The translations under genes were made by a program, and so were the position numbers. Below the pieces are notes generated by a model that saw only the letters and a program-made list of their open reading frames with translations, was not told where the DNA came from and did no database searches. Below are positions 4,219-59,927 of a stretch of 64,000 bases of DNA, piece by piece. Location of the stretch: positions 1 to 64,000 of the IMG/VR virus record IMGVR_UViG_3300029258_003221, one strand, 5' to 3'. Position 1 is the first letter of the stretch. Every line of letters starts with the position of its first letter.

Positions 4219-4752
4219 TTGGGCTGTTTCTCAATGAGCATAAAATGCGTATCTGATATTGATCGCCCGCTTATTGTCGGTGAAAGATACAAAGTAGAAT
4301 GCTTGAAGGCCAAAATAGGAAAACGGTTATTTTGGTTGCCTGTTCTTTGTTCACATGTTGGAGATTTTTCAGAAGAAAATCATTTTCATTTAGACAGTCG
4401 ATTTCTTACTGATTTCTTTTATAAATTGCTTAATTGGAAGCCACATTATGTTTTTGGCGTTCCTGATGATCAGATTTTAGGCAAAAGACTGAAGATCAAA
4501 ACTTGTGTACGCCAATTTGGAATTCCACACACAGATCAAGTTGATACTTTTCGCAAACTTCAAAATCTTTGCAAAAACAGAATTGTCAATTGTTTGACCT
4601 GCCCCCATCAAGGTGTTGATCTTAGCCAAGTGCCTGTCACAAATACTTTAAACGAATCTGTTCGTTATTGCCCGGCACATGGGTTGAAATGGAGTGCAGA
4701 AGATGGAAGAATGATTGAAAGAGACTCATTTTTTGAAATTTCCGGCATATGA
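4219..4752 (+). CDS. Protein with a C-terminal Rieske-like [2Fe-2S] motif
   Basis: TCPHQG ... YCPAHGLKW (CxH / CxxH pair). Confidence 0.6.
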   Translation: MGCFSMSIKCVSDIDRPLIVGERYKVECLKAKIGKRLFWLPVLCSHVGDFSEENHFHLDSRFLTDFFYKLLNWKPHYVFGVPDDQILGKRLKIKTCVRQFGIPHTDQVDTFRKLQNLCKNRIVNCLTCPHQGVDLSQVPVTNTLNESVRYCPAHGLKWSAEDGRMIERDSFFEISGI

Positions 4753-4753
4753 A

Positions 4754-4933
4754 ATGCTGTGTTTACTAAAGTCTTTATTGGTTATTGTGTCTTTCGTGTT
4801 GTTTGGCACATCGATTCAATTGATGATTTTGGGAAATTTTTTGATTGGGGGCTTGCTTTTGATTCCCGCTACAGATATACTTCGAGACATCTGTGAAACT
4901 CAAAAGAGTTTGGCACACCAGTTGCATAAATAA
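4754..4933 (+). CDS. Small membrane protein
   Basis: Two hydrophobic stretches; start refined. Confidence 0.4.
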   Translation: MLCLLKSLLVIVSFVLFGTSIQLMILGNFLIGGLLLIPATDILRDICETQKSLAHQLHK

Positions 4934-4978
4934 GCCACAGACATTAATTTCACTGTCATTTTGACACAGGAGAAGATC

Positions 4979-5329
4979 ATGAAACCCGACACGTAGAACG
5001 TCAAACATTACAGCTATATCTTTGTCAGGGAAGACCTGACAACCTCTCAGCAGGCGGTACAATGCTGTCATGCCGCCATCAACGCCACTGCCAAATACGG
5101 TCTAGGCGATTTGCCAGACCATCCTTATCTTGTCATCTTGGCAGTCAAGAATGAATCCAAGTTGCTCCGGGTACAAAAATACCTGTCAGAGCACGGAATT
5201 CAGTTCTCTTCTTTTCACGAGTCTGATCTCGATAATGAGCTTACGGCTATTGCGACCGAGCCCATTAAAGAGCATCAACGTGCAATCTTCCGCAAGTATC
5301 AGTGCCTTAAACCAAGGGAGGCTGCGTGA
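4979..5329 (+). CDS. Pth2-like peptidyl-tRNA hydrolase with an in-frame TAG at codon 6 (4994-4996)
   Basis: AGGAG-N6-ATG; MKPDT*NVKHYSYIFVREDLTTSQQAVQCCHAAI...FHESDLDNELTAIATEP. The Pth2-type VRxDL/QxxHAA motif lies upstream of the ORF-track start 5111, and no alternative start codon lies between the TAG and the motif. Confidence 0.8.
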
Positions 5330-5511
5330 TGAGTCAAATCAAAGACCTTATCGAAGAACTAAAATCTCTTACCCGTTATGACATGGAAGTCAGAGAATAT
5401 GGTCGAACCAAATTTCGTGATTCACATGCTGAAGCACGTGAAGTGGTTTCTGGAGATGGAGACTGGGTGGAGTGGGAAGATATTGTTTATTTGATCAAGG
5501 AGTATGAATGA
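5326..5511 (+). CDS. Hypothetical protein
   Basis: ORF track; GTGA overlap with the upstream gene. Confidence 0.6.
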   Translation: MMSQIKDLIEELKSLTRYDMEVREYGRTKFRDSHAEAREVVSGDGDWVEWEDIVYLIKEYE

Positions 5512-5521
5512 GTTTGAATGT

Positions 5522-5671
5522 GGGACAGAGGTGGATTGGTTCACACAAACCAACAATTTGTTGTTGGCCTGCATGGGTTCGAGTCCTGACAGGATGCAAT
5601 GAATTGTTGGGGAGGCAGAATTGCCAGCCGTTTTCGGAACGGCCTTGCAGGTTCGATTCCTGCCTGTCCCA
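5522..5671 (+). ncRNA. Expanded tRNA-like RNA (150 nt)
   Basis: Perfect acceptor stem GGGACAG/CTGTCCC; Leu-like D-arm; perfect T-arm GCAGG-TTCGATT-CCTGC; long variable arm GCCGTT-TTCG-GAACGGC; extra hairpins where the anticodon arm should be. Confidence 0.6.
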
Positions 5672-5676
5672 CTTAT

Positions 5677-5751
5677 GGGTGCGTAGCTCAATTGGCAGAG
5701 CAGCGAGTTCTAGCCTCGTGTTTGTTGCAGGTTCGATCCCTGTCGCACCTT
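5677..5751 (+). tRNA. tRNA with anticodon CTA (amber suppressor), Trp-like body, no encoded CCA
   Basis: Cloverleaf: GGGTGCG/CGCACCT; GCTC/GAGC; GCGAG-TTCTAGC-CTCGT (CTA at 5710-5712); GCAGG-TTCGATC-CCTGT. Confidence 0.85.
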
Positions 5752-5756
5752 TTTTA

Positions 5757-5914
5757 CCGCAGGTAGCTCAGTTGGTAGAGCGTTGCTTGTGTTGAAGCTA
5801 AGACAATGGTGTACAACATTGAATTAGTGAATGCACACGTGCTGTCAAAAGTGGCCACTTTTGGCTGTCATGTAAACATAGCAGAGGTCGGAGGTTCGAG
5901 TCCTCAACTGCGGA
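5757..5914 (+). ncRNA. tRNA-like gene whose anticodon loop is replaced by a 92-nt structured segment
   Basis: CCGCAGG/ACTGCGG; GCTC-AGTTGGTA-GAGC; anticodon stem TTGCT(5783-87)/AGCAG(5880-84); AGGTC; GGAGG-TTCGAGT-CCTCA. Confidence 0.65.
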
Positions 5915-5954
5915 ATATTTTCATTTTTCCCCGGATAGAAAGGAAGAAGTTGTG

Positions 5955-6356
5955 ATGTAGAAATGGCATTGGAATCAAAAACTTGGACCTGAAAACTGTC
6001 CATACATGGTGCGATGGGTGTTTGATTTTTACTTCTTCACCATTCGTATTCATCATTGGCTTCATAGTGACGATTTGCGTCACCCCCATGATCATCCTTG
6101 GTCTTTTTGGGCCATTTGTTTGTGGGGCGGATACACAGATGTTTCACCAGATGGCGAGGACCGAGTGCGACCGGGAAGTGTACGGTTTCGCTCGGCTCTT
6201 CACCAACATTCTGTTAAAGTTGATGAAGGTGGATGTTGGACCATCCTTTTGACAGGACGTGAGCATCGTCGTTGGGGTTTTTGGGTTAATGGTAAGTTTC
6301 GTAAAAGAAACAAGTATTTCTATATGATGGGTCATCACAATCCATGTGATTCATAA
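5955..6356 (+). CDS. Cupin-like phage protein with an in-frame TAG directly after the start (5958-5960)
   Basis: AAGGAAG RBS then GTG ATG TAG AAA TGG CAT TGG, giving M*KWHWNQKLGPENCPYMVRW...HHWLHSDDLRHPHDHPW; the ORF-track start 6006 lacks an RBS. Confidence 0.7.
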
Positions 6357-27518: not shown

Positions 27519-27677
27519 ATGCAAACTCAGACCATAATGCCACCACCAAAACCGCCCGAGGACAACATTGTTGCCTCGGGCTTTCCTGATGACATTCGAG
27601 ATATCGGTGACCGAATCGCCGCACTCTCCTCTGATCAAGCATCAAAGCTGTCCCAATACCTCGACGGAAAACAATGA
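27519..27677 (+). CDS. 52-aa protein resembling only the N-terminal domain of ribosomal bL12 (not in the track)
   Basis: MQTQTIMPPPKPPEDNIVASGFPDDIRDIGDRIAALSSDQASKLSQYLDGKQ; ATGA overlap with 27674. Confidence 0.55.
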   Translation: MQTQTIMPPPKPPEDNIVASGFPDDIRDIGDRIAALSSDQASKLSQYLDGKQ

Positions 27678-28489
27678 AGCACGACAGAGTTATGATCCTT
27701 GGCTCCAATGGATACCTTGGAAAAAAGTTCCATGAAGCCTACCCAGAAGCCATCACCACAAACATCGATATCATGGACCAAAGAGAACTCCTCAGTGCCA
27801 TCGATGTCAATTCACCCAATGTTATCATAAATGCCGCAGGAAAAACCGGTAGACCAAATGTGGATTGGTGTGAGGATCACAAAAAAGAAACTCTTAGATC
27901 AAATGTTACAGCCCCTCTGATGATCTGTGATGAAGCCCTCAAACGAAATATCTACTTCGTCCACATTAGCTCAGGATGCATATATCAAAATGGGGAATTT
28001 GGAGAAGATGATGAGCCTAACTTCAAAGGGAGCTATTACTCTAAGACGAAGGCGTTTGCTGATCAACTTCTGGCTGACTTTCCTGCTTTGGTCCTTCGCC
28101 TGAGAATGCCATTCGATGATTCCCTCGGCGAACGAACTCTTATCGGCAAAATCTTAAAGTACAAGCGTGTAATCGATGTCAAGAACTCCCTGACCTACAC
28201 GCCAGACTTTGTTGAGACTGCTCAAAAGCTCATAGATCGCCGCAAAACAGGCATCTACAATGTCGTGAATACAGGGTCCATCTCCCCATTCGAAATCATG
28301 GAGATGTACAAAGAACACGTCGATCCCAATCATGAGTTCGAAAAACTCCCTCTCGAAGAACTGGGAGACTACTGCAATACAGGTAGAAGCAACTGCCGAC
28401 TGTCAACAAAAAAACTGGCAGAAGAAGGATTGGAACTGCCTCCAATCCACACTCGGCTCAAAGAAGCTATGCAAAAGATCGCATCATAG
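27674..28489 (+). CDS. NDP-4-keto-6-deoxy-sugar epimerase/reductase (RmlD-like, rhamnose synthesis)
   Basis: ILGSNGYLG, NAAGKTGRPNVDWCE, SSGCIY, YYSKTK. Confidence 0.9.
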   Translation: MKHDRVMILGSNGYLGKKFHEAYPEAITTNIDIMDQRELLSAIDVNSPNVIINAAGKTGRPNVDWCEDHKKETLRSNVTAPLMICDEALKRNIYFVHISSGCIYQNGEFGEDDEPNFKGSYYSKTKAFADQLLADFPALVLRLRMPFDDSLGERTLIGKILKYKRVIDVKNSLTYTPDFVETAQKLIDRRKTGIYNVVNTGSISPFEIMEMYKEHVDPNHEFEKLPLEELGDYCNTGRSNCRLSTKKLAEEGLELPPIHTRLKEAMQKIAS

Positions 28490-28765
28490 CTCGATCTCTT
28501 CGTCGTCCCAGATGATAGCTTTCTGATCAAACCGCTTGCCGAGTTCCGTGAGGTCTTCTAAAGAGATGTCGCTGATCTCAAACGCATCTTCCTCGTGCCC
28601 ATTGTAGCTGCCTCGAACCGGAACAGGATCGTATCCACGATCTCTCAGAAACTGAAGAAGCTCTCTATTGGCGTCTTCGTTCTCCTTGTCCGGGAGCTTG
28701 TTACCCATTGGGTTGTGTGCAGTGATAACACCACGCTTTCTGACGAACTCTCGAAATGTGCCCAT
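28484..28765 (-). CDS. DUF3293-like protein with a capsid-targeting-like N-terminus
   Basis: MGTFREFV; ITAHNP...EN..AN..L...G.Y..EE. Confidence 0.6.
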   Translation of the reverse strand: MGTFREFVRKRGVITAHNPMGNKLPDKENEDANRELLQFLRDRGYDPVPVRGSYNGHEEDAFEISDISLEDLTELGKRFDQKAIIWDDEEIEL

Positions 28766-31336: not shown

Positions 31337-32443
31337 TCATATCTCCGTCGAACTGGCGGCGATGTATTCTAAATTACAACTGGCATTGAAGTCTCGGTCG
31401 TGGTGAGTTCCACATCCATCGCAATCCCATTCTCGGTCTGCCAAGGTCAAGTTTTGATTGATCTGACCGCAAATCGAACATGCTTTGCTGGATGGGAAGA
31501 AACGATCCACAGGGACGATCCTGCATCCATACCAAGTTCCTTTATATTCCAGTTGTCTTCTACACTCGAAAAATCCAATATCTGCGATTGATCGAGATAA
31601 TCTTCTGTTCTTCAACATTCCAGACACATTCAAGTCTTCAATTCCAATCGCACGCTTGGTTTTCGCTAATGCTGTTGTCATCTTGTGTAATGTATCTTTA
31701 CGAATGTTGCTGATCTTGAAGTAGAGCCGAGCAAGACGGTTCGCCGCTTTCTTTCGGTTCTGACTTCCTTTTTGTTTGCGACTCAAACTTCTGTTGAGCC
31801 GCTTGAGTTTCCTTAGTTTTTTCTTGAGCGGTTTCGGGTTCTCAAAGGTTGTCCCATCGCTCACGGTTGCCAGTGTTTTGATCCCCAAATCCATACCAAC
31901 CACATCATGTTCGTCCTTCTGGATATTGGGTTCTAACATATCTTCTTCAACTTGAATGCTGACAAACCACCTACCTGCTCTTTCACTTACAGTTGCCGAC
32001 AATATCTTGGCATCGGTTGGCAGGTATCCACTTTCTTTGAGTTTTAGTTTTCCAAGTCTCGGAAGTTGGATTGTTTTCTCTGTTACTTTGATCGTTCCCG
32101 TCAGTCGAAACCCGCCGATGCCTTTTCTCTTACTCTTGAATTTCGGGAACTTTCCTCGCTTCTTGAAGAAATTGTCAAAAGCACGATCTAGGTTTCTAAG
32201 GGCTTCCTGTGGGCTACATTTGCTGACTTCATACATCCAAGGGAATGTATCTTTCTTGAGGTCGTTGAGGCGACGGTGAAGTTCAATGGCGTTGGGAATC
32301 TTATCTTTGACTTCCATCGCTTGCTTCTTCTGGTTCATGCCCCAATTATATGTGAACCTAGCAGCACCAGCATGTTTTAGACATGCGGTTCGCTGCTTGT
32401 TGTTCAACCTCAATTCGGTCTTATAGCCCCTCTGTATCTTCAC
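31337..32443 (-). CDS. tnpB: TnpB RNA-guided nuclease
   Basis: RuvC I VGMDLGIK, RuvC II GIEDLNV, zinc finger CSICG...CDGCG, RuvC III DRDFNAS. Confidence 0.96.
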   Translation of the reverse strand: MKIQRGYKTELRLNNKQRTACLKHAGAARFTYNWGMNQKKQAMEVKDKIPNAIELHRRLNDLKKDTFPWMYEVSKCSPQEALRNLDRAFDNFFKKRGKFPKFKSKRKGIGGFRLTGTIKVTEKTIQLPRLGKLKLKESGYLPTDAKILSATVSERAGRWFVSIQVEEDMLEPNIQKDEHDVVGMDLGIKTLATVSDGTTFENPKPLKKKLRKLKRLNRSLSRKQKGSQNRKKAANRLARLYFKISNIRKDTLHKMTTALAKTKRAIGIEDLNVSGMLKNRRLSRSIADIGFFECRRQLEYKGTWYGCRIVPVDRFFPSSKACSICGQINQNLTLADREWDCDGCGTHHDRDFNASCNLEYIAASSTEI

Positions 32444-32861
32444 ACTCCTCCTCTGCTATGAACTTGCCGAAATCATGTTCATTGAACTCAGCAGTTTCAT
32501 AGACATCCCATCCAAGAACAACAGGGTCTTCGCCAACAGGCAAAGGCTGTCCATGTCCATCTAACAATGTGCCATCACGTTTTACATCAATGTGTTTAGC
32601 TCGCCAGCCATCGTACCAAAAGCCACCACGATTGAATGTGATGCAACCTTTGGGTTTGTATTCAACAACAATGTCAAATGTTGCTTCCTGCCCCATACTA
32701 ACAGGCTTGCGTTGCTTGAATTCTTTGATCTTGCAACTTTTGGGTTCTTTGCTCATCCACTCTGTTTCATTCAACTTATTCATTAGACCAAACATCAACT
32801 TTGTTGGGTCTTTCGTAACCAACTCGAACTTCAAGTAAGTTGGATTCACATTATCGGTCAT
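32421..32861 (-). CDS. Cargo hypothetical protein
   Basis: ORF track; overlaps both neighbours. Confidence 0.7.
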   Translation of the reverse strand: MTDNVNPTYLKFELVTKDPTKLMFGLMNKLNETEWMSKEPKSCKIKEFKQRKPVSMGQEATFDIVVEYKPKGCITFNRGGFWYDGWRAKHIDVKRDGTLLDGHGQPLPVGEDPVVLGWDVYETAEFNEHDFGKFIAEEECEDTEGL

Positions 32862-34849
32862 GCAACCTCCTTCAAATAATGTTCTCTCGCCGCCGCAGCT
32901 TCCTCTATGGTGTCATAAGTCCCGACACTTTGACGACCAACTCTTGCTGACCATCTCCCATTGGCTTGTTTGTAAACACCCTTATGTCCAGAGCCAGCCA
33001 ATTTTTGGCAATCGCATTTTGAGTTTGCCTTCATATTGCCGGGCAATCGTTGAAACTCTTTGCCATGCTCGCACCTGACTGTCACATACTCAAAAAATCC
33101 AGCATATTCTGACGCCAACTCCCACCCTTTATCCTCAAGAAACTGCAACAATTTTTGCTTTCCGTAATCCAAGCAGTTAGTTCTTACACAATCGCATTGG
33201 GCGTGTGGCCGCACGGCAGATCGACGCTTCATAGTGAAAACTTCACCATGTTCGCACCTAATTTGGATTTCACCCTCGCCACTATATTCAGATAGCAACT
33301 CCCACCCACGATTGGCAAAGATTTCAGTCAAGTTATCCTTACCCATCTCAGTCATTCTTTCGCCAGAGGCGATGTCGCAACAACGTGGACAACCACACTC
33401 GTTCTTGAAGTTCTGCACCAGCGTCGTCCAGACATGACCCTTATCGCACTGGATGGTCATATCTCCGTAGTATCCTTTATACTCCGAGAGACGCTTCCAG
33501 CCCCTCCGCTCCATCTCAGTGTCAATAATTTGAGTTTGGTGTTCTTTATCTTGCGGACGTTTAGATGAATAATCCCAAGAGTAGAATTTCTCTTTCTTGC
33601 AATCCATCGAAACAGACGAATCTTCGTAAAGCCAATCTCTAATTCGGAGTGCTGGCGTTCCACTGTAGCTGAACAATGACGCTGTGGAGTTCTTTAGTTC
33701 TCGATCATACTCCTCTTTGCTTCGGTCTATCACAGTATTCTTCGAGACATTGGCTTCTTCAACAATGACATCCACCACATCCTCAAGGAATTTAGGAACA
33801 GCCCCGCAAATGCTGAATGTTGGAGTTTTGTAAACCTTATGCCTGTATTTCGTAGTGCCAACGCTCACTGACCCGTCGCCATCGAAAAGTCCTCGGATGA
33901 AGTGTCTTCTCAACTCTTTAGGAATATCAGGAAAAGAAACAAGAAAGGTTTTGTTCGGAATAACGCCATGTTTCATCAAGGCTTCTACGAAACCAGTGTG
34001 ACAACATTCAAGAGTGTATTTGGTTTTCTTTCCGCCCTTATTTTTGCTGCTCACATGATATGGACCAAGAACCTTGCCTGTATATCCGATTGCATCCTTG
34101 AACTTCTCTAAATGTCTCTTCCCTTCTACAACCAACGAAATACGAAGCCGGTGTGGATTGAGTGCAACTGATCCGTCTGCATAGATGAACCCAAGCCAAT
34201 ATGCCTTTTCTTCTGTGTCTATCTCATCAAAGAAGTTGAAATCAAATGTGTATTTTCTAATCAAACCAGCAGAGCGGCGACTGCCAACTTTCAGTGTTAC
34301 TGCACGCCCGATGATGGCATTCCAAGTTCTATTGGGCAAGCCAGCTTGGATGAACTCTTGACTTTCCTTGGTGTAACTTGAGCGAAGAAAATCATCTTCC
34401 TCAGATGACCACGAAAAATCAGGCTTACTCAAGCCCAGTTTGACCGCCTTGTTCCTAATCTCGGATTCAGTCTTGTCTGAAAGCAATTCAAGCAATTCCG
34501 AATTGCTCATGGTGGCATAATTGGATTTCAACAAATCTAACTCTTTAGAAGTCCATTTCTTTCGCTTTCTGGTAAGCCCCAATCGGCAGGCTCTATCTTT
34601 GATTGCCTTGTATTTGCGGTTCGGAAGCAAATTCGACCATTGATCGGCTGCGATCTTGCCATAATACTGCCTGACAACATCATCTTCCGCCAACTGCCAT
34701 TTAGTATCTTGCGTCAAGCCAAGCCGAGATAATTTGTGTCTTATAGAAGTGTCACTCTTATCCAACTCGTTACTCAACCAATCAGTCGGTTTATCCGCAT
34801 TTTCTACAAGAAATGCCTCTTCTTTCTTAGTCCAATGCTTTCCGCTCAT
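32858..34849 (-). CDS. Multidomain LAGLIDADG endonuclease: 4 Myb-like repeats, double LAGLIDADG, 3 Zn-ribbon repeats, AP2-like domain
   Basis: WTxxE repeats; YWLGFIYADGSV and FIRGLFDGDGSV; GW.LLSEY...C..GH...C repeats; SGHKGVY...GRWSARV...GTYDTIEEAAAAR. Confidence 0.9.
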   Translation of the reverse strand: MSGKHWTKKEEAFLVENADKPTDWLSNELDKSDTSIRHKLSRLGLTQDTKWQLAEDDVVRQYYGKIAADQWSNLLPNRKYKAIKDRACRLGLTRKRKKWTSKELDLLKSNYATMSNSELLELLSDKTESEIRNKAVKLGLSKPDFSWSSEEDDFLRSSYTKESQEFIQAGLPNRTWNAIIGRAVTLKVGSRRSAGLIRKYTFDFNFFDEIDTEEKAYWLGFIYADGSVALNPHRLRISLVVEGKRHLEKFKDAIGYTGKVLGPYHVSSKNKGGKKTKYTLECCHTGFVEALMKHGVIPNKTFLVSFPDIPKELRRHFIRGLFDGDGSVSVGTTKYRHKVYKTPTFSICGAVPKFLEDVVDVIVEEANVSKNTVIDRSKEEYDRELKNSTASLFSYSGTPALRIRDWLYEDSSVSMDCKKEKFYSWDYSSKRPQDKEHQTQIIDTEMERRGWKRLSEYKGYYGDMTIQCDKGHVWTTLVQNFKNECGCPRCCDIASGERMTEMGKDNLTEIFANRGWELLSEYSGEGEIQIRCEHGEVFTMKRRSAVRPHAQCDCVRTNCLDYGKQKLLQFLEDKGWELASEYAGFFEYVTVRCEHGKEFQRLPGNMKANSKCDCQKLAGSGHKGVYKQANGRWSARVGRQSVGTYDTIEEAAAAREHYLKEVA

Positions 34850-46803: not shown

Positions 46804-49329
46804 TTACATTTCTGAAAAATCTATCTCTTCTTCATCCTGCTCTTTAGCGTAATCCTTGATATCCAGATTGTATTTCTGAATATCTTCTTCTGTTGGATCA
46901 GGTAAAGGCGTGGCTCCTGTTGGTCCTTCCATTCCGCCTGATGGGCCTTGATCATCTCCTGTTGGAGCAGGTGCTCCACCCATTCCCATATCATCTTCAC
47001 CGCCTTCTTCACCTTCTGGCGGTTGATCTCCCAACATAGGACTTGGTCCACCAGCTTCTCCACCAATTTCGGTTTCGTCTGGTCCGGGAAGTCCAACGCC
47101 CAAAAGCATTGGGTTTTGAGCAATGATTTGGAGTTTGAGTTCTTCCATCTTTTGGATTTTAAGACGAGCAAGCATCTTCAGAGCTTCTTCTTCATCGTAT
47201 TTCATCCACTTGGTAAGAATATCAAAGTCCGACATGAGTTGTGCTCCTTTCAAAGCACCGGCGTTTTGAATTCTACCAGCTACAACTTCTGATCTTGTTA
47301 GCTCACGCCAATCAGAAGGTGGAGTTAACTTAATTTCCAAATCCTCATAGGCTTCTTTTGGGAAACCAAGCAGCGTTAAGTGACGGTTGCAAATTTCCCA
47401 AAAAGCGTTCTGAATGTGAGATTGAAGTCGTTCGATCATGCGAGCGAACTTCACATCCTGTGCAGACAGGGTGATTCTTGTACTTTGAACATCTTCGTTA
47501 TTGAAATAGTTCTTAGGGAAATTCAGAGCTGTAAACAGTTTATTTCTGAAGTAGACTGTATCATCGATTTCACCAAGATTCTGAGCACCCGGTAAAGTTT
47601 CAACTCTTGTGTTGGAGTTGGGCCTAACAGGAATCCAGTAATCTTCATCGGCTGCTGGTGCGTGCCAACGTTCTTCAACACTGGAGGCACCCGGCAATCC
47701 AGATTTTCCGGTAGCAACCTTTTTCTTTTTGAACTGATCTTTCATTCGTTCAACAAAGGCTTCCGCCCTGTAAGGCGGAAGCTGGAACGTGTCAATATAG
47801 AACACTCTACGTTCTGGTGCTCTTGTCAATCGATAAACCACCATGGCATCTTCCATCAATCTCAATTGATGAGCAGGTCCACGTGCTGCTTCAATAAGAC
47901 TTACACCATATGGATAGAATGTTTGTCTATCATCCCCGACACGAATATGCACAACCTGATCTGCTGCGAATCTAATAGCTGTAGCTTGTTGTAAATCTGC
48001 TTCTGTTGCCTGTGTGACTTCCACACGGGAAAGGCTTTGGTAGTCAGGCCCTTCTTTAGACTGTTGGAATTCAACCAATTTTCCTTTGGTTGTTTCAATT
48101 CGATACATGCTGTCAGGAGGCAATGGAACAAGACCTACGATACCATGTTTAGGGTTTTCCAAATCAATAATGACTTCATAAAAGAAGTCGCCCATGATGA
48201 ATAATCTTTTGGCCATGTCCCAACATGTATTTTGGTCCATATTAAGCATGTCACGATGAAACAATAGATATTCACATTCTTCTTTGACTGATTCATTGCC
48301 GCAAACAACCTGCATTACTCTGCCATCTTCATTTTTCTGGCAATTGTGAACAACTCCCCAGTTTGTACAGAAGTTATGATGTTTCTCAACAGTTAGGTCA
48401 TAGACATCAATCTCTTCCCAAGGTTGTATTCCGACAACTCTTCTTCGATCTTCTTTGCGACCGAGCCATTTCATCTCTTTGTTTGAGAATCCAGCTTTTT
48501 CGATTCGGCTTTTAATTGTCTTGAAGTCATGACCTGTCATGTCAACAATCTGCTGAGTCGTCAATCCTTCAGAGATGTATCGACAAAGTTTGTTAACGCT
48601 TTCAAGTTCAGGATTGTCTTTGCCCGTAGCCCATTCGTCGGCAAACTGTCGTTCGTGAATCCAGCCTTTGCGATGAGTATAAATTCTAGGGAACTGATTG
48701 ACTTTGATTTCGGTAATATCCGGGTTTGGCGAAATGCGATAGAAAGGCATGAGTTCATCACCGGAATTTAGTTCACCTGCTTCTCTCCATGTACCTTTTC
48801 TGGTCATAATTCGGTGATCAGGTGTGCAGATCACATAATTGCCATCATCAAAAATGATTTTGATTGTTTTGGCTTTTTTGGTTTTACGTGCATCAAATGC
48901 CCAGCCAAGCGTATAATCGCCTTTATCCTGATCATAGCAATAGACTAAGAATCGCTCGTTTTCATTGACGAGATCTTCGATCTTTTTATATCCATGTGGT
49001 GTGGCGATAAGAGTATCGCCAGCCAAACAGGTCTCATCTGCGAAAACGGTCATTGCCATTTCGATTTCCGGCATATTTCGCAGTCGTTCGTATTCTTTGT
49101 AGCGATGAACTCTATTAGTGACGGTACTTAAATCTACGAAATCATTAGTGTCTCGAAGGCGAATGGCCCCTCGTCCACCACCTGTAGTTCCGTCATTGCC
49201 ACCCCTGATGTCAGGAATAGCTCCATCAACTGGATATCCCGCTCCACTGGCATCTCGGTCTCTGCGTCTTGCGAGTGGATCATCAGTGAAAGCGTAAGTG
49301 AAAGTTTTGAAATAATCCCACCAAGCCAT
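46804..49329 (-). CDS. gp20: Portal protein, T4 gp20-like, with an intein
   Basis: RLMEDAMVVYRLTRAPERRVFYID, EDYWIP, VETLPGAQNLGEIDD, FARMIERLQ. Confidence 0.96.
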   Translation of the reverse strand: MAWWDYFKTFTYAFTDDPLARRRDRDASGAGYPVDGAIPDIRGGNDGTTGGGRGAIRLRDTNDFVDLSTVTNRVHRYKEYERLRNMPEIEMAMTVFADETCLAGDTLIATPHGYKKIEDLVNENERFLVYCYDQDKGDYTLGWAFDARKTKKAKTIKIIFDDGNYVICTPDHRIMTRKGTWREAGELNSGDELMPFYRISPNPDITEIKVNQFPRIYTHRKGWIHERQFADEWATGKDNPELESVNKLCRYISEGLTTQQIVDMTGHDFKTIKSRIEKAGFSNKEMKWLGRKEDRRRVVGIQPWEEIDVYDLTVEKHHNFCTNWGVVHNCQKNEDGRVMQVVCGNESVKEECEYLLFHRDMLNMDQNTCWDMAKRLFIMGDFFYEVIIDLENPKHGIVGLVPLPPDSMYRIETTKGKLVEFQQSKEGPDYQSLSRVEVTQATEADLQQATAIRFAADQVVHIRVGDDRQTFYPYGVSLIEAARGPAHQLRLMEDAMVVYRLTRAPERRVFYIDTFQLPPYRAEAFVERMKDQFKKKKVATGKSGLPGASSVEERWHAPAADEDYWIPVRPNSNTRVETLPGAQNLGEIDDTVYFRNKLFTALNFPKNYFNNEDVQSTRITLSAQDVKFARMIERLQSHIQNAFWEICNRHLTLLGFPKEAYEDLEIKLTPPSDWRELTRSEVVAGRIQNAGALKGAQLMSDFDILTKWMKYDEEEALKMLARLKIQKMEELKLQIIAQNPMLLGVGLPGPDETEIGGEAGGPSPMLGDQPPEGEEGGEDDMGMGGAPAPTGDDQGPSGGMEGPTGATPLPDPTEEDIQKYNLDIKDYAKEQDEEEIDFSEM
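48343..49029 (-). mobile_element. Intein (229 aa) in the portal
   Basis: N-terminal CLAGDTLIAT, block B CTPDHRIMT, C-terminal VYDLTVEKHHNF...VVHN followed by +1 Cys. Confidence 0.95.
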
Positions 49330-54109: not shown

Positions 54110-55282
54110 ATGAAAACTGAATGGAAGTGGATAGCGATACTAGCTTTGATGTTCACTCTAAGCATGAGTGTATTATTGTTGTTTTCCAAGCATAGAAGTG
54201 CTCCCAAGTTTACCCCACCCAGTTACATACAAAGACCACCACAATGGGTAGAGCCGGAGCCTGAACCTGAACCAGAACCTGATCCATATACATTTGAAGA
54301 TGCTGTCACTTCAATTACCGAAGAGTCTCTTAAGAAAGATCTCTATTATCTTGCTTCAGATGAGCTTGAAGGAAGAATGTCAGGGAAAAGAGGAAATGTA
54401 ATTGCTGCAAAATTCATCAAAGACAAATTTGAAAGTTTTGGTCTTAAAACGATGTATCATAGATTCAGAATTCGAAGAATGAATTCAGGGCCTAAGAATG
54501 AACGAGGTGATGATTTTACTCAAAACATTTATGGTTGGATCGAAGGTAATGATCCAGAATTGAAAGATGAAATTGTTGTAATTGGTGCTCATATGGACCA
54601 CATTGGTTACGGTCCTTCAATGTCTCGTTGGGGAGGTGGAAGGATTCATCCGGGTGCGGATGACAATGCTTCAGGGACTGTTGCTCTCTTAGAAATTGCT
54701 GAAGCTTTTTCAATGATGAAAGACCGGATAAAGAGAACAATTGTTTTTCAGGCTTACTCTGCTGAGGAAATGGGGTTGATTGGAAGTCGATATTATTGCA
54801 ATAATCCTGAATTCCCAATTCACAACCCTTCTATGAAAAAGCACGTTTTCATGCTCAACATGGATATGATTGGGCATTTGGGACAAGGCAGGTTTGCTAC
54901 GTCGTTTTTTGATGGAAACAGTTCCATTGACATTGATCGATACATTAGAGAATTGAATGAAAAGTACTCTTTTGCCAGATCAATTACTGGTCGGCGAGGT
55001 GGAGGAAGTGACCATGCCTGTTTTTACAACAAGCGTGTTCCTGTTGCTTTCTTGCACACGGGAGGCCATTCACATTATCACAAGCCAAGTGACACACCGG
55101 ATAGAATCAACTATTCGGGGATGGAGAAAGTTGCACGTTATGGATTTGAGCTGGCTTGGAAGGTTGTTCAATCAGAAGCGAGTCCAACATTTAATCATGG
55201 CGGCTTTAAAGAATTGCCATACATTCATGATCACGGACACGGTGTTCCGTTCATACACAATCACACACACGGAGAGAATTAA
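54110..55282 (+). CDS. Membrane-anchored M28 peptidase
   Basis: N-terminal TM and PEPE linker; IGAHMDH, GADDNASG, YSAEEMG, LNMDMIG, GSDHA, YHKPSD. Confidence 0.92.
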   Translation: MKTEWKWIAILALMFTLSMSVLLLFSKHRSAPKFTPPSYIQRPPQWVEPEPEPEPEPDPYTFEDAVTSITEESLKKDLYYLASDELEGRMSGKRGNVIAAKFIKDKFESFGLKTMYHRFRIRRMNSGPKNERGDDFTQNIYGWIEGNDPELKDEIVVIGAHMDHIGYGPSMSRWGGGRIHPGADDNASGTVALLEIAEAFSMMKDRIKRTIVFQAYSAEEMGLIGSRYYCNNPEFPIHNPSMKKHVFMLNMDMIGHLGQGRFATSFFDGNSSIDIDRYIRELNEKYSFARSITGRRGGGSDHACFYNKRVPVAFLHTGGHSHYHKPSDTPDRINYSGMEKVARYGFELAWKVVQSEASPTFNHGGFKELPYIHDHGHGVPFIHNHTHGEN

Positions 55283-57856: not shown

Positions 57857-58399
57857 TCAGATGCCCCACTTATCTCTAAGACGCTCTAAATATTCTCCTA
57901 CTTTTTTCATCTTTTGCTCTTTGCGAGCTTCTTTTTCAGCTTTCTTGTGAGCTTTTCTTATTTGAACAGCCTCTTCGTGAAGTTTTTCAATTCTGTCTTC
58001 CCATTCCGGGAATGGATTATATCTTTCTAAATCCCCAGCAATTTCCACAAAAACTTCATATCCTTTGAAAGTAACTGTCAGACGTTTTTCGTGATCAATG
58101 TACTTAATTTCCAAATGAATGCCTCTATTTAAGCCATCGAACATCCAGCCAACTTCATAAAGCCCACCACTTTCTGCATCAAATACAGGAATTTCATTCA
58201 TGATTTGTTCATTGCCGAAAGAGTCCATTGGCACTTCATAGGGATCTTCCCACAGAGGTTCTGATTCAGAACTGTGAAAAGTTATTGGGCTTCCTAAAAA
58301 TTTACAGATAACTCCGAGTTTCCCACCCGGACCCATTAAATTTTTTCTTGTTGCTTCTATGGTCCTTCTTTCTTTGACCATAGATTCCTTGGAATCCAT
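57857..58399 (-). CDS. Hypothetical protein
   Basis: AGGAGG RBS; start refined. Confidence 0.65.
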   Translation of the reverse strand: MDSKESMVKERRTIEATRKNLMGPGGKLGVICKFLGSPITFHSSESEPLWEDPYEVPMDSFGNEQIMNEIPVFDAESGGLYEVGWMFDGLNRGIHLEIKYIDHEKRLTVTFKGYEVFVEIAGDLERYNPFPEWEDRIEKLHEEAVQIRKAHKKAEKEARKEQKMKKVGEYLERLRDKWGI

Positions 58400-58445
58400 T
58401 TTCCCTCCTGAATTGTTACTCCTATATATTAGTGAAGGAGGGGCT

Positions 58446-59927
58446 ATGTTCAAAAAACTCAAATCAATGTTTTCAAGTTGTTTTAACTTCTACGAAACAG
58501 GCACAGAAATGGAAACCAGTGCCAGACGACGTTGGAGAATTAAAAAGAAACAAGTTAAATCTGGACCTGTTACAAAAGATAAAGAAATAGAATATCTGAT
58601 CAATGATCGTTCAACGCCTGATTTGGTTAAGATGGTTATGCCACCTGAGCCTTACAATCTTTTGAATTATTCAGTTCATCAATACAAAGGTGGTGGTTTC
58701 CCATCTGATTCAGATGAAGGGCGTGCTGCAAATGTGTATGTGACGGTTACAAACTGTTTGAACATGATGCGTAAGTATTCTAACAAACCTTTAGTGCGAT
58801 GGGCTGGCACAAAAGACCTTGCTGTTCTTCCTATGGCGGGAACTGATTTCAATGCATTTTACAATCGTAAATCAATGCAGTTTTTCTTTTCTTATGACCC
58901 TGTTGCAAAGGTGCCAATTTTCACATCAGAATCTGCTGACATTGTTGCTCACGAATTGGGCCATGCTATTCTTGATTCATTCCGACCTGACACATGGGGA
59001 GTTGCATCTCTTGAAGTTTGGTCTTTCCACGAAGCTTTTGCAGATCTAACAGCATTACTGTCAATCATGCAACACGATGAAATTCTCAAATATGTTCTTG
59101 CTGAAACCAAAGGCAACATAAGAATGGAAAGTGTTATGACTCGTTTAGCGGAAAGTATGGGACGAGCAATTTACAACATTACAGGTGGTCAGGGCGGTCG
59201 TCCAAAGAATCATCTTCGATCAACAATCAACAACTTTAAATACGTCAATCCGGGAACGCTCCCAAAACAAGCTCCTCACAACAAACTTGCCGCAGAATGT
59301 CACAGCTTTGGTCGTGTTTTTCTAGGTGCTTTTTATGATATTATGGAAATGATGTATCATGAAAATGTCGCACAGGGCAAAAGTCAGTTGAAGGCTCTTA
59401 AAGAAGCAAGAGATACTTTGGGCAAATATGTCTTCAAGGCAATTATGCATGTTCCAGTGAATGTCAAATTCTATGAATCATTTGCTAAAACAATGTTGTG
59501 GGTTGATCACAATCAACCAAACCGACCTTATTTTGAAAAGATGCGAGAAATTTTCCTTGATCGAAATTTGATGAAGCCTCAAATTCGCATGTTGAGTGCT
59601 CCTCCTGTTGATGAAGATGGAGACGGCATTGTGGCTTTGGGAAGTCAAGTTCCAATGACTTTGTCTCATCACATCATTCGAGCACAGGGACAAGATGAAA
59701 ACCCACTTTATGACGTAGAACTCGTTGCTGCCAAAGAAGGTGCATTTTTCTATGATCAAAATACTGGAAGTGCAATTGATCACGTCAGTGTTTCTGACGA
59801 AGATGTTCTTAGTGCTCTTCAGGATATGATTGTTTTTCTGCACGAAACTGGTGCAGTAAGTGATGATGAGTCTACGCCTTTTGAGATTAAAGATGGAAAA
59901 TTAGAGAGGACTCATTTTTCATGGTAG
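58446..59927 (+). CDS. Zinc metallopeptidase (thermolysin M4/M36-like)
   Basis: FNAFY, VAHELGHAILD (HExxH), FHEAFAD; start refined. Confidence 0.88.
   Translation: MFKKLKSMFSSCFNFYETGTEMETSARRRWRIKKKQVKSGPVTKDKEIEYLINDRSTPDLVKMVMPPEPYNLLNYSVHQYKGGGFPSDSDEGRAANVYVTVTNCLNMMRKYSNKPLVRWAGTKDLAVLPMAGTDFNAFYNRKSMQFFFSYDPVAKVPIFTSESADIVAHELGHAILDSFRPDTWGVASLEVWSFHEAFADLTALLSIMQHDEILKYVLAETKGNIRMESVMTRLAESMGRAIYNITGGQGGRPKNHLRSTINNFKYVNPGTLPKQAPHNKLAAECHSFGRVFLGAFYDIMEMMYHENVAQGKSQLKALKEARDTLGKYVFKAIMHVPVNVKFYESFAKTMLWVDHNQPNRPYFEKMREIFLDRNLMKPQIRMLSAPPVDEDGDGIVALGSQVPMTLSHHIIRAQGQDENPLYDVELVAAKEGAFFYDQNTGSAIDHVSVSDEDVLSALQDMIVFLHETGAVSDDESTPFEIKDGKLERTHFSW

Follow-up and report, generated by a model that had tools for sequence, protein, structure and literature searches.

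A large phage that otherwise uses TAG as a stop codon begins two of its genes with a very short leader followed by an in-frame TAG, and encodes a tRNA with anticodon CUA between them. The same pairing of an amber-led gene with tRNA(CUA) recurs in dozens of diverged phages, including cultured jumbo phages, and would give their suppressor tRNAs, so far regarded as "orphan," a first conserved target. We found no prior description of this arrangement; the authors of the XacN1 study read through the TAGs that end the genes of that phage in silico and reported that they could not identify targets for its CUA tRNAs (PMC5852040). The analysis is based on a window of 64,000 nucleotides (positions 1 to 64,000 of IMG/VR record IMGVR_UViG_3300029258_003221); only these 64 kb of the 235-kb genome were screened for other targets.

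The amber-led PTH2-like gene and its neighbors

The observation that prompted this study, a Pth2-like coding region placed in frame behind a five-codon mini-ORF ending in TAG, is confirmed. The frame remains open after the TAG up to the TGA and reads MKPDT-stop-NVKHYSYIFVREDL...QAVQCCHAAI... (Table 1). No ATG, GTG, or TTG occurs between the TAG and the TTG at 5111, a gap of 38 codons, and thus the first strand and helix of the protein precede any canonical start codon. The sequence-only reading had named the absence of a PTH2 match as an outcome that would refute it; this was not the case, as the post-TAG piece matches Pfam PTH2 (PF01981) with E-value 1.3e-7 and 32.2 bits against a cutoff of 23, covering profile positions 4–103 of 115, while the ORF starting from the TTG covers only profile positions 52–103 and falls below the cutoff. 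Many relatives score below the cutoff when tested alone. The AlphaFold model (pLDDT 96.7, pTM 0.89) is consistent with this assignment, the top 15 Foldseek matches in PDB all being Pth2, Bit1, or DUF2000 proteins with TM 0.66–0.77 (about 0.75). The public protein collection already holds the 116-aa read-through product with Q at the TAG position, i.e., a code-15 gene call.

Table 1. Features of the amber-led locus (coordinates in the window)
Coordinates	Strand	Feature	Observations
4910..4933	+	Conserved promoter-like element TTGGCAC-N5-TTGCA followed by TAAATAA; TGGCAC 4911–4916, TTGCA 4922–4926, CATAAATA 4925–4932	Overlaps the end of the upstream ORF 4715–4933; two conserved blocks separated by a variable 5-nt spacer in 12 related loci, most with TTGACT just upstream; fits the sigma-54 -24/-12 consensus, but can also be read as a sigma-70-type or T4-late-type promoter; function not established
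4940..4957	+	Short hairpin (GACA, 10-nt loop, TGTC) between the promoter-like element and the ribosome-binding site	Relatives have GGCAG...CTGCC, ACAG...CTGT, or CAGT...ACTG at the same position, pairing being kept through changes on both sides; a 5' mRNA stem is inferred, with no role assigned
4968..4972	+	Shine–Dalgarno AGGAG, 6 nt before the leader ATG	An SD-like sequence precedes the leader ATG in nearly all lineages
4979..4993	+	Five-codon leader ATG AAA CCC GAC ACG (MKPDT); ATG 4979–4981	Relatives keep M-K-P-D/E/H/N-T through synonymous changes (Pro CCC/CCG/CCT/CCA, Thr ACG/ACA/ACC, Asp GAC/GAT), which indicates translation in this frame
4994..4996	+	In-frame amber codon TAG, followed by A (TAG AAC)	Conserved as TAG in about 44 of 49 lineages plus cultured phages
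4997..5329	+	Body of the PTH2-fold protein (fold predicted), 110 codons plus TGA at 5327–5329	Strand beta1, residues 4–11, and helix alpha1, residues 16–34, of this piece
5329..5511	+	Small ORF, 60 aa from the ATG at 5329, start overlapping the PTH2-like stop (TGATG)	No family found, function unknown; not conserved in relatives; in relatives L002–L005 the tRNA directly follows the PTH2-like gene
5522..5671	+	tRNA-like gene with a ~78-nt insert in the anticodon region	Rfam tRNA, 29.4 bits against a gathering score of 29; not called by ARAGORN
5677..5751	+	tRNA with anticodon CUA (amber suppressor), 350 nt downstream of the PTH2-like gene	Called by ARAGORN; Rfam tRNA, 52.2 bits, E 5.6e-10; canonical cloverleaf, class I, G1-U72, U73, G37, no encoded CCA; homologous position in relatives
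5757..5914	+	tRNA-like gene read as tRNA-Asn(GUU) with an 83-nt insert at position 38/39	Rfam tRNA, 33.4 bits; ARAGORN in intron mode
5955..6356	+	Second amber-led gene: ATG 5955–5957, TAG 5958–5960, then a 131-codon cupin ("cysteine dioxygenase" phrog_4786)	Ordinary ORF call starts at the ATG at 6006; phrog_4786 match at E 1.5e-32 starting at residue 6 after the TAG

The protein is a divergent paralog rather than an ortholog of the archaeal/eukaryotic peptidyl-tRNA hydrolase Pth2. It shares with Pth2 the fold over the full length and the R-x-D-L ... VQ-x-x-HA core, and, similarly to the canonical PTH2 of jumbo phages (Iyer et al., PMC7824862), is found in large phages rich in tRNA genes. However, it scores far below the curated NCBIfam equivalog models (20.0 bits against a cutoff of 126 for NF003314, and 18.5 against 82 for TIGR00283). 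In S. solfataricus Pth2, the lysine of the G-K segment and the aspartate of D-A-G are the catalytic Lys18 and Asp86; in HMM alignments to 24bt and 2zv3, this Lys aligns with an invariant Gln in a segment two residues shorter, and the Asp aligns with the near-invariant Glu75. Esterase activity is thus unproven, and neither peptidyl-tRNA hydrolysis nor complementation of pth(ts) was assayed here. The same phages carry in addition a canonical, normally started PTH2: these genes are annotated full-length, and RaK2 ORF188 starts at a clean ATG, so that an amber leader in canonical phage PTH2 was rejected.

The cupin gene was found by an unbiased scan (see below). Its relatives L002, L005, L007, L008, and L010 (L numbers denote related loci or lineages) have ML-stop or MS-stop leaders and a conserved W.(Q/E)KLGP..CPY block upstream of the internal ATG of the window gene. 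The amber leader is not a family-wide trait of the cupin, as the distant cupins L082–L086 start normally and have no tRNA(CUA) nearby.

Conservation of the early TAG and its linkage to tRNA(CUA)

A start of the homologs downstream of the TAG position had also been named beforehand as a result that would overturn the reading, and this was not observed either. Related loci were sought with alignment A1, as the deep alignment A2 lacked a conserved block. About 44 of 49 lineages at <90% identity (down to ~32% identity), as well as cultured phages GAP32, Arash, ME3, RsoM2USA, XacN1, and Xoo-sp13, have a leader of 1–7 codons followed by TAG, never by TAA or TGA. In about 39 lineages no ATG, GTG, or TTG, and no conserved alternative start, lies between the TAG and the conserved body. 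The TAG tracks the start of translation: in HD-PTH2 fusions it sits at the head of the fusion. In the tree, 46 rows with TAG are opposed to four scattered clean rows. Some loci have a second in-frame TAG in the leader (L024, L060) or TAGs inside the body (L011–14, L056, L059, L063). The TAG occurs in independent assemblies from many samples and in finished genomes of cultured phages.

The arrangement is far more frequent than expected by chance. An unbiased scan of 441 kb for an SD, ATG, 1–7 codons, a stop, and an open frame of at least 80 codons yielded 44 cases with TAG, six with TGA, and one with TAA, although TAA is the most common terminator in these genomes. HD-domain genes that are not Pth-like carry the same amber leader in other phages.

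Of 99 unique tRNAs within 3 kb of the gene, 36 are CUA, all on the same strand; 29 of 49 lineages have one in the flank retrieved (17 of 26 loci with full flanks). Among the cultured phages, GAP32, Arash, ME3, and RsoM2USA have both the TAG and tRNA(CUA), whereas RaK2 has neither in 40 kb. The linkage is strong but not absolute: two TAG-less lineages (L022, L053) still have a tRNA(CUA) nearby, and several TAG-bearing loci show no CUA within 3 kb. These genes often lie in tRNA clusters, which inflates co-location in general, though not the 36% share of CUA, and the p-values treat lineages as independent; no phylogenetically corrected comparison of tRNA(CUA), the PTH2-like subfamily, and the TAG leader over all complete phage genomes was made. 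The body is under purifying selection, with dN/dS 0.07–0.17 at dS 0.55–1.7.

The codon before the TAG is Thr in 21 of 47 lineages, mostly ACG, and a purine follows the TAG in 46 of 47; a purine at +4 improves amber suppression in E. coli (PMC6266110). The CUA tRNAs are class I with diverse acceptor stems, the clade of the window having G1-C72 (G-U in the window itself), G2-C71, G3-C70, and U73. The tRNA of the window has G37 instead of the usual A37, and, given also its G1-U72 pair, may be a weak suppressor.

Interpretation and alternative explanations

Taking all this into account, we consider it likely, though not certain, that the gene is intact, that translation starts at the ATG of the leader, and that the UAG at codon 6 is decoded as a sense codon by the phage's own tRNA(CUA). 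In this view, the full-length PTH2-fold protein would be made only when the suppressor tRNA has been made, processed, and charged and competes successfully with host RF1, and in proportion to that, whereas upon failed suppression the only product would be a five-residue peptide. The cupin gene on the other side of the tRNA would be gated in the same way, as would HD-phosphohydrolase genes in other phages, so that the tRNA and its amber-led neighbors would form a small suppressor-dependent gene set in a phage that otherwise terminates at TAG. The gene architecture, its deep conservation, the linkage to tRNA(CUA), purifying selection, and a suppression-friendly context follow directly from the data, whereas the decoding by this particular tRNA and the reason for the gate are our inference; there is no expression, charging, or proteomic evidence, and the inserted amino acid was not identified. 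The leader region cannot be aligned with the TAG-less homologs, the CUA tRNAs were not scored with isotype-specific tRNA models, and existing proteomes or ribosome-profiling data of jumbo phages were not searched for the leader peptides. As to the purpose of the gate (a self-limiting loop, clean-up, or a timer), we prefer a self-adjusting loop. The PTH2-like and HD products would be enzymes of the tRNA 3'-end type, and tying their synthesis to the charged state of a sentinel tRNA would either limit an esterase that can discharge tRNAs (negative feedback) or dose a clean-up activity to the amount of read-through. A simple timing gate is about as likely, and the amber leader of the cupin does not fit a loop specific to tRNA-ester hydrolysis. 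A more speculative possibility, which we hold only tentatively, is that the suppressor tRNA is a sentinel in a virus-encoded homeostat, where the PTH2-like esterase, with the HD phosphohydrolase where present, acts on tRNA 3' ends, including that of the suppressor, and the N-terminal UAG makes the enzyme's own synthesis report the charged state of the tRNA pool. If so, this would be an autoregulatory recoding circuit working through a dedicated tRNA instead of a release factor, and the reason why standard-code jumbo phages keep "orphan" amber suppressors.

The interpretation offered by the sequence-only reading is partly supported. Its claims that the product is PTH2-like and that an intact protein requires read-through hold, and the early stop, for which it proposed a check in phage homologs, is conserved in them, but it missed the suppressor tRNA, which would supply read-through directly, and its proposed mechanism, a lambda-bar-like minigene whose peptidyl-tRNA drop-off, the substrate of Pth, is sensed as in prfB autoregulation, which we spell out as read-through by host near-cognate tRNAs rising or falling with Pth activity, has no support and seems unlikely. 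The leaders do fall in the length range in which minigenes sequester tRNA and early peptidyl-tRNA drop-off is frequent (PMC2490762; PMC10192219), the product has the predicted PTH2 fold, and the codon before the stop, which matters for minigene effects, is strongly biased to Thr. However, the stop is always TAG, in about 47 lineages, whereas a drop-off or termination sensor should work with any stop; a cognate suppressor tRNA is linked to the gene across the family; cupin and HD genes, which are not Pth-like, have the same leader; and the protein is a divergent paralog coexisting with a canonical PTH2. Moreover, no step connects low Pth activity to increased read-through, as tRNA starvation at the leader would yield less product, which is the wrong sign. 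A prfB-like logic, in which the product influences decoding of its own in-frame stop, remains possible in a modified form acting through the suppressor tRNA, but was not examined here.

Genome-wide reassignment of TAG (genetic code 15) could be suggested by the tRNA(CUA), this being the known use of phage suppressor tRNAs (10.1101/2021.08.26.457843), and by the public gene call with Q, but is also unlikely. TAG terminates nine of 87 confident genes in the window and only two genes require read-through; the capsid, portal, and terminase genes (gp23, gp20, and gp17) are intact; and making TAG a sense codon lengthens ORFs less than doing so for TAA or TGA. Neighboring ORFs in relatives end in TAG about 11% of the time (only the stop-usage totals of the analysis of 6-kb flanks are used, as its test for TAG-bridged frames included non-coding frames), the cultured members are annotated normally under code 11, and XacN1 has 18 TAG-terminated genes. 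It is similarly unlikely that the TAG really terminates, with the body translated by re-initiation or from a non-canonical codon just downstream. Although short upstream ORFs with translational coupling are common in phages and the linker after the TAG is short (2–8 codons), the absence of alternative starts in about 39 lineages argues against this, re-initiation would not require TAG specifically, and it would explain neither the linkage to tRNA(CUA) nor the second TAGs in leaders and those inside the body. A pseudogene or an assembly error, despite the stop at codon 6, is refuted by conservation and selection. Pyrrolysine, which the ARAGORN label "tRNA-Pyl" might suggest, is very unlikely, as ARAGORN gives this name to any CUA tRNA, and the tRNA is an ordinary cloverleaf with a GG D-loop and a TTCGA T-loop that scores well on the general tRNA model, lacking the atypical features of tRNA-Pyl; no pyl genes were seen in the window, though they were not searched for specifically.

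Comparison with known systems

In code-15 phages (crAss-like, Lak, and others; model of Borges et al., 10.1101/2021.08.26.457843), a phage-encoded tRNA(CUA) likewise allows translation of genes with in-frame TAG in a standard-code host, and such genes stay silent until the tRNA acts. Here, TAG remains a working terminator, only one to three genes next to the tRNA carry the amber, it always lies within the first 2–8 codons, the amber-led genes are accessory genes in an early-type region rather than late structural or lysis genes, and the core target is one specific protein family across very different phages. In prfB (RF2), a conserved early in-frame stop also makes the yield of the product depend on the competition between termination and recoding, but prfB uses UGA at codon 26 and a +1 frameshift stimulated by an internal SD, and RF2 itself reads the stop. 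Here, the body is in the same frame as the leader and no frameshift is needed, the inferred recoding agent is a dedicated tRNA, and any effect of the product on that tRNA is unproven. Lambda bar and other toxic minigenes share a strong SD, an ATG, a few sense codons, and a stop, but here the mini-ORF continues in frame into a conserved protein and the stop is always TAG with a cognate suppressor next door; peptidyl-tRNA accumulation, toxicity, and Pth dependence were not measured. In programmed read-through in viruses, e.g., the Q-beta A1 protein, an in-frame stop is also read through at some frequency to make a longer product, but both short and long products are functional and host tRNAs do the misreading, whereas here the short product is a peptide of 1–7 residues and the virus brings its own cognate tRNA.

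Suppressor tRNAs are annotated in many large standard-code phages, and the proposed conserved target is truncated or missed by ordinary gene callers: GAP32_397 and Arash gp84c are annotated as fragments, and several genomes have no gene there at all. Annotation pipelines should look for short leader-plus-TAG starts next to tRNA(CUA). The gene-specific N-terminal amber gate would be a form of translational control distinct from whole-genome code reassignment, and may represent a stable alternative to, or an early stage of, that reassignment. The module is directly testable, as it exists in cultured phages of Cronobacter, Salmonella, Acinetobacter, Ralstonia, and Xanthomonas, and the natural leader/tRNA pairs could also serve as compact suppression-dependent switches.

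A PADLOC search gave no hit to known defense or anti-defense families. The promoter-like motif TGGCAC-N5-TTGCW is not recurrent in this phage, as it has five matches with at most one mismatch and 13 of 100 shuffles reach that number, and a generic promoter/terminator scan of 4600–6100 found nothing above shuffles. Two other TAG-interrupted candidates were rejected: 57857–58651(-) has an upstream stretch that is not protein-like and an internal ATG start, and 27674–28561(+) has only a 23-codon tail after its TAG. The remaining genes bounded upstream by TAG lack an SD plus start plus conserved gap, and TAG as the previous in-frame stop (19 of 87 genes) is close to its share of stop triplets.

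Gene architecture and the adjacent tRNA(CUA)

The phage is T4-like, with a gp23 capsid, a gp20 portal carrying an intein, and the gp17 terminase; the window comprises the first 64 kb of a 234.6-kb IMG/VR contig. A Shine-Dalgarno sequence AGGAG is followed, after 6 nt, by ATG AAA CCC GAC ACG TAG, and the same frame then stays open for 110 codons (coordinates are summarized in the table). The absence of a PTH2 match had been named in the sequence-only reading as an outcome that would refute it; in a profile search, the post-TAG piece matched Pfam PTH2 at 32.2 bits, with a cutoff of 23, covering profile positions 4–103 of 115, whereas the ORF reported by an ordinary gene caller, starting at a TTG, covers only the second half of the domain and falls below the cutoff. 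An AlphaFold model built on 100 homologues is very confident (pLDDT 96.7, pTM 0.89) and places strand β1 at residues 4–11 and helix α1 at residues 16–34 of the post-TAG piece, upstream of any ATG, GTG, or TTG. Its 15 best PDB matches are all PTH2-fold proteins (archaeal Pth2, human Bit1, DUF2000), aligned over the full length at TM about 0.75. The earlier observation of a PTH2-like gene behind a five-codon leader and TAG is confirmed in every detail.

That reading overlooked, however, a canonical tRNA with anticodon CUA located on the same strand, 350 nt downstream, which was found by both ARAGORN and Rfam (52 bits). It is flanked by two tRNA-like genes with inserts of ~78 and 83–91 nt in the anticodon region, the second of which reads as tRNA-Asn(GUU) with an insert at position 38/39. 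The inserts are too short for typical group I introns, and the first contains a second T-arm-like segment; the nature of these genes was not identified. The phage has not reassigned TAG: it ends nine out of 87 confident genes, compared to 45 for TAA and 33 for TGA, the structural genes contain no in-frame TAG, and making TAG a sense codon lengthens ORFs less than doing the same with TAA or TGA.

Features of the window and of related loci (L followed by a number denotes a related locus)
Position	Strand	Feature
Window 4910-4966	+	Conserved upstream element and hairpin
Window 4968-4996	+	AGGAG, 6 nt, ATG AAA CCC GAC ACG TAG
Window 5111	+	TTG start of the ordinary ORF call
Window 5327-5329	+	TGA ending the PTH2-like frame
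Window 5329-5511	+	60-aa acidic ORF
Window 5522-5671	+	tRNA-like gene with insert
Window 5677-5751	+	tRNA with anticodon CUA
Window 5757-5914	+	tRNA-like gene with insert
Window 5955-5960	+	ATG TAG of the cupin gene
Window 5955-6356	+	Amber-led cupin gene (phrog_4786)
Window 6006	+	ATG used for the cupin by ordinary callers
Window 4219-4752	+	ORF with weak Rieske [2Fe-2S] match
Window 54110-55282	+	M28-family peptidase gene
Window 31337-32443, 32858-34849, 46804-49329	-	TnpB/IS605 OrfB gene, 663-aa ORF with LAGLIDADG and HNH-type endonuclease matches, and intein inside the gp20 portal gene
L016:3320, L051:844, L080 (RsoM2USA):20903		Stand-alone HD/HDIG genes
L007 4490-4563; L008 4433-4506 and 4677-4751; L036, L056		L007: tRNA with anticodon UCA (opal suppressor type) next to the tRNA(CUA); several loci: two different CUA tRNAs, one with G37 and one with A37

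Conservation of the early amber and its linkage to the suppressor

Homologues were collected from assemblies, IMG/VR, JGI metagenomes, and GenBank phages; the conserved body was located in each locus with an HMM, and the sequence was read upstream in frame. Homologues starting downstream of the TAG position had likewise been named beforehand as evidence against the reading. Out of 49 lineages at <90% identity, reaching down to about 32% identity with the window protein, about 44 have a Shine-Dalgarno sequence, an ATG, a leader of 1–7 codons, and then TAG, e.g., after MKPDT, MPHT, MKDL, MRPDT, MT, ML, MF, MS, MR, MK, MNHT, and MNEKTGW. In about 39 of these, no canonical start lies between the TAG and the body. 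Four lineages start cleanly (L022, L053, probably L066, and RaK2), and one is cut off by a contig end. Where the body is fused to a ~180-aa N-terminal HD domain (XacN1, Xoo-sp13, and L050; the HD assignment was confirmed), the TAG sits at the head of the fusion, after MK, MKK, or MNYKVGW, and therefore tracks the start of translation and not the PTH2 body. Additional in-frame TAGs were acquired independently in the same gene, as a second TAG in the leader (L024, L025, L060) or in a surface loop of the body, α1–β2 (L011–L014 and L045, after RFAPG; L056, L059, and L063, after AFYDP); L026 and L064 have Ser where L056 and L063 have TAG.

Cultured phages show the same design, with leaders MAQ in GAP32, ML in Arash, MT in ME3, and ML in RsoM2USA, although public annotations truncate or miss the gene (GAP32_397, Arash gp84c/gp85c, ME3_195, and records with no gene there). 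About half of the database representatives of the family begin inside strand β1, and many others carry a Q at residue 2–7 that corresponds to TAG. On a maximum-likelihood tree, the four clean starts are scattered singly among 46 TAG-bearing rows, three being nested inside TAG-bearing clades and RaK2 branching next to the outgroup; the amber is therefore ancestral to nearly the whole family.

Between the window and its relatives, the body has dN/dS of 0.07–0.17, although synonymous sites are near saturation (dS 0.55–1.7). The leader keeps its peptide through synonymous changes (Pro CCC/CCG/CCT/CCA, Thr ACG/ACA/ACC, Asp GAC/GAT), which indicates that it is translated in this frame and that the TAG has been held in place throughout. 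Hence, a pseudogene and an assembly error are excluded.

Out of 99 unique tRNAs within 3 kb of these genes, 36 have anticodon CUA, and no other anticodon exceeds six. All 36 lie on the strand of the gene, between 2.9 kb upstream and 3.1 kb downstream. A tRNA(CUA) lies in the fetched flank in 29 out of 49 lineages, and in 17 out of 26 loci with full flanks. The linkage is not absolute, as L022 and L053 lack the TAG but keep the tRNA, and some TAG-bearing loci show no CUA within 3 kb. ME3 has an annotated “anticodon CTA” tRNA 506 nt upstream, GAP32 has an annotated “Sup-tRNA” 3.1 kb downstream, Arash has one 1.3 kb downstream that is annotated as tRNA-Phe, and RsoM2USA has one 13 kb away, whereas RaK2 has no TAG, and none of its eight tRNAs within ±20 kb is CUA.

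The residue before the TAG is Thr, mostly ACG, in 21 out of 47 lineages, compared to a background of 4.4%, and the base after the TAG is a purine in 46 out of 47, compared to a background of 57%; the p-values treat lineages as independent, and the statistics are not phylogenetically corrected. A purine at +4 is the classical context for efficient amber suppression in E. coli (PMC6266110).

Other amber-led genes and the PTH2-like protein

In order to search for other such genes without bias, we scanned 441 kb (the window plus 51 loci) for a Shine-Dalgarno sequence, ATG, 1–7 codons, a stop, and an open frame of ≥80 codons, and obtained 44 cases with TAG, six with TGA, and one with TAA. Besides the PTH2-like genes, the scan revealed a second amber-led gene in the window, in which ATG TAG is followed by a 131-codon cupin. 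It matches phrog_4786, annotated as “cysteine dioxygenase,” at E 1.5e-32, and the match begins 10 residues upstream of the ATG used by ordinary callers. Relatives L002, L005, L007, L008, and L010 have ML or MS leaders before the TAG and a conserved block upstream of that ATG; thus, in this clade the tRNA(CUA) is flanked by two amber-led genes. More distant cupins start normally and have no tRNA(CUA) nearby, and therefore the cupin acquired its gate locally, whereas the PTH2-like gene is the core partner of the tRNA. Within the window, which represents only 27% of the genome, no other gene shows the full architecture. Stand-alone HD genes next to the PTH2-like gene in L016, L051, and RsoM2USA are amber-led too, as is an unknown gene in L055. 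This HD/HDIG phosphohydrolase (phrog_14850) is either fused to the N-terminus of the PTH2-like body (L033, XacN1; L078, Xoo-sp13; L050) or encoded right after it, and in both arrangements it starts with a short leader plus TAG.

The protein belongs to the PTH2 superfamily but is not an orthologue of Pth2, the NCBIfam equivalog models being missed by a wide margin (20 bits against 126). In HMM alignments to solved Pth2 enzymes, the R-x-D-L ... VQ-x-x-HA core is kept, but the G-K segment is two residues shorter, with an invariant Gln in place of the Lys, and the Asp of D-A-G aligns with the near-invariant Glu75; the Lys and Asp are reportedly the catalytic residues, according to work on S. solfataricus. 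In at least seven jumbo phages (GAP32, CBB, Serratia BF, XacN1, Xoo-sp13, RsoM2USA, and RaK2), the gene coexists with a canonical PTH2 about 6–12 kb or more away, which keeps the G-K motif, starts normally, and is annotated full-length. PTH2 in jumbo phages has been noted previously, with a proposed role in ribosome rescue (Iyer et al., PMC7824862). The recurrent fusion or adjacency to an HD/HDIG phosphohydrolase suggests, by inference only, an activity at tRNA 3′ ends; the activity of the enzyme is unproven.

Possible mechanism and further features of the locus

The architecture, its conservation, the linkage, the selection, and the suppression-friendly context are all directly supported by the data, whereas decoding of the UAG by the phage’s tRNA(CUA), in competition with host RF1, is inferred, though with good confidence; there are no expression data, the inserted amino acid is unknown, and the tRNA of the window is atypical (G37, G1-U72). 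In this view, the protein would be made only when, and in proportion as, the suppressor is functional, and failure would cost only a peptide of 1–7 residues. The purpose of the gate is open, with three options. The esterase may discharge tRNAs, including the sentinel suppressor, and so throttle its own synthesis in a self-limiting loop, which has prfB-like logic but works through a tRNA; the gate may dose a clean-up activity to the amount of read-through; or it may be a simple timer or gate, like a miniature version of the code-15 model of Borges et al. The amber leader of the cupin favors a general gate, while the family-wide amber in two enzyme types that act at tRNA ends favors a loop.

The interpretation given in the sequence-only reading is supported only in part: the PTH2-like product, the need for read-through, and the conserved early stop hold, but the proposed mechanism, an autoregulatory sensor analogous to the lambda bar minigenes and prfB, has no support, and several results argue against a bar-like drop-off sensor. 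The stop is exclusively TAG, a cognate tRNA is linked to the gene, and genes unrelated to Pth share the gate; moreover, the model lacks any step linking Pth activity to read-through, and tRNA starvation would give the wrong sign. At the same time, the leader lengths do fall in the range where drop-off is frequent, and thus drop-off may accompany failed suppression.

Suppressor tRNAs in standard-code jumbo phages have been described without targets (PMC5852040; PMC8386662), and PTH2 in jumbo phages and code reassignment have been described as well. We found no description of an amber-led PTH2-like gene or of a suppressor-linked gene set of this kind in the literature searched, although this does not prove that none exists. 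We consider the system as phage suppressor-tRNA-dependent translation, which is known as such, in a form that we have not seen described.

Upstream of the leader ATG, the window and L002, L004, L005, L007–L010, L036, L037, L041, and L046 share a conserved element, (TTGACT)TTTGGCAC-N5-TTGC(A/T), which matches the sigma-54 −24/−12 consensus and can also be read as a sigma-70 or T4-late-like promoter. It is followed by a hairpin whose stem changes in a compensatory way, and then by TTTTGACA; it is specific to this locus and is not a recurrent motif in the window. The 60-aa ORF after the PTH2-like gene starts in the TGATG overlap with its stop, which suggests translational coupling; it has no family match and is absent from close relatives.

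A GatB/YqeY-like “glutamyl/aspartyl-tRNA amidotransferase” gene lies 1–16 kb upstream of the PTH2-like gene in three unrelated jumbo phages (XacN1, Xoo-sp13, and ME3), and ME3 also has a tRNA nucleotidyltransferase 2.2 kb upstream. In the window, the weak Rieske match (E 4.9e-4, 20.4 bits against a cutoff of 20.3) lies in the ORF two genes upstream of the module, and the peptidase gene lies next to the terminase, both being unusual cargo for a T4-like phage. The mobile elements listed in the table lie inside a T4-like structural region.
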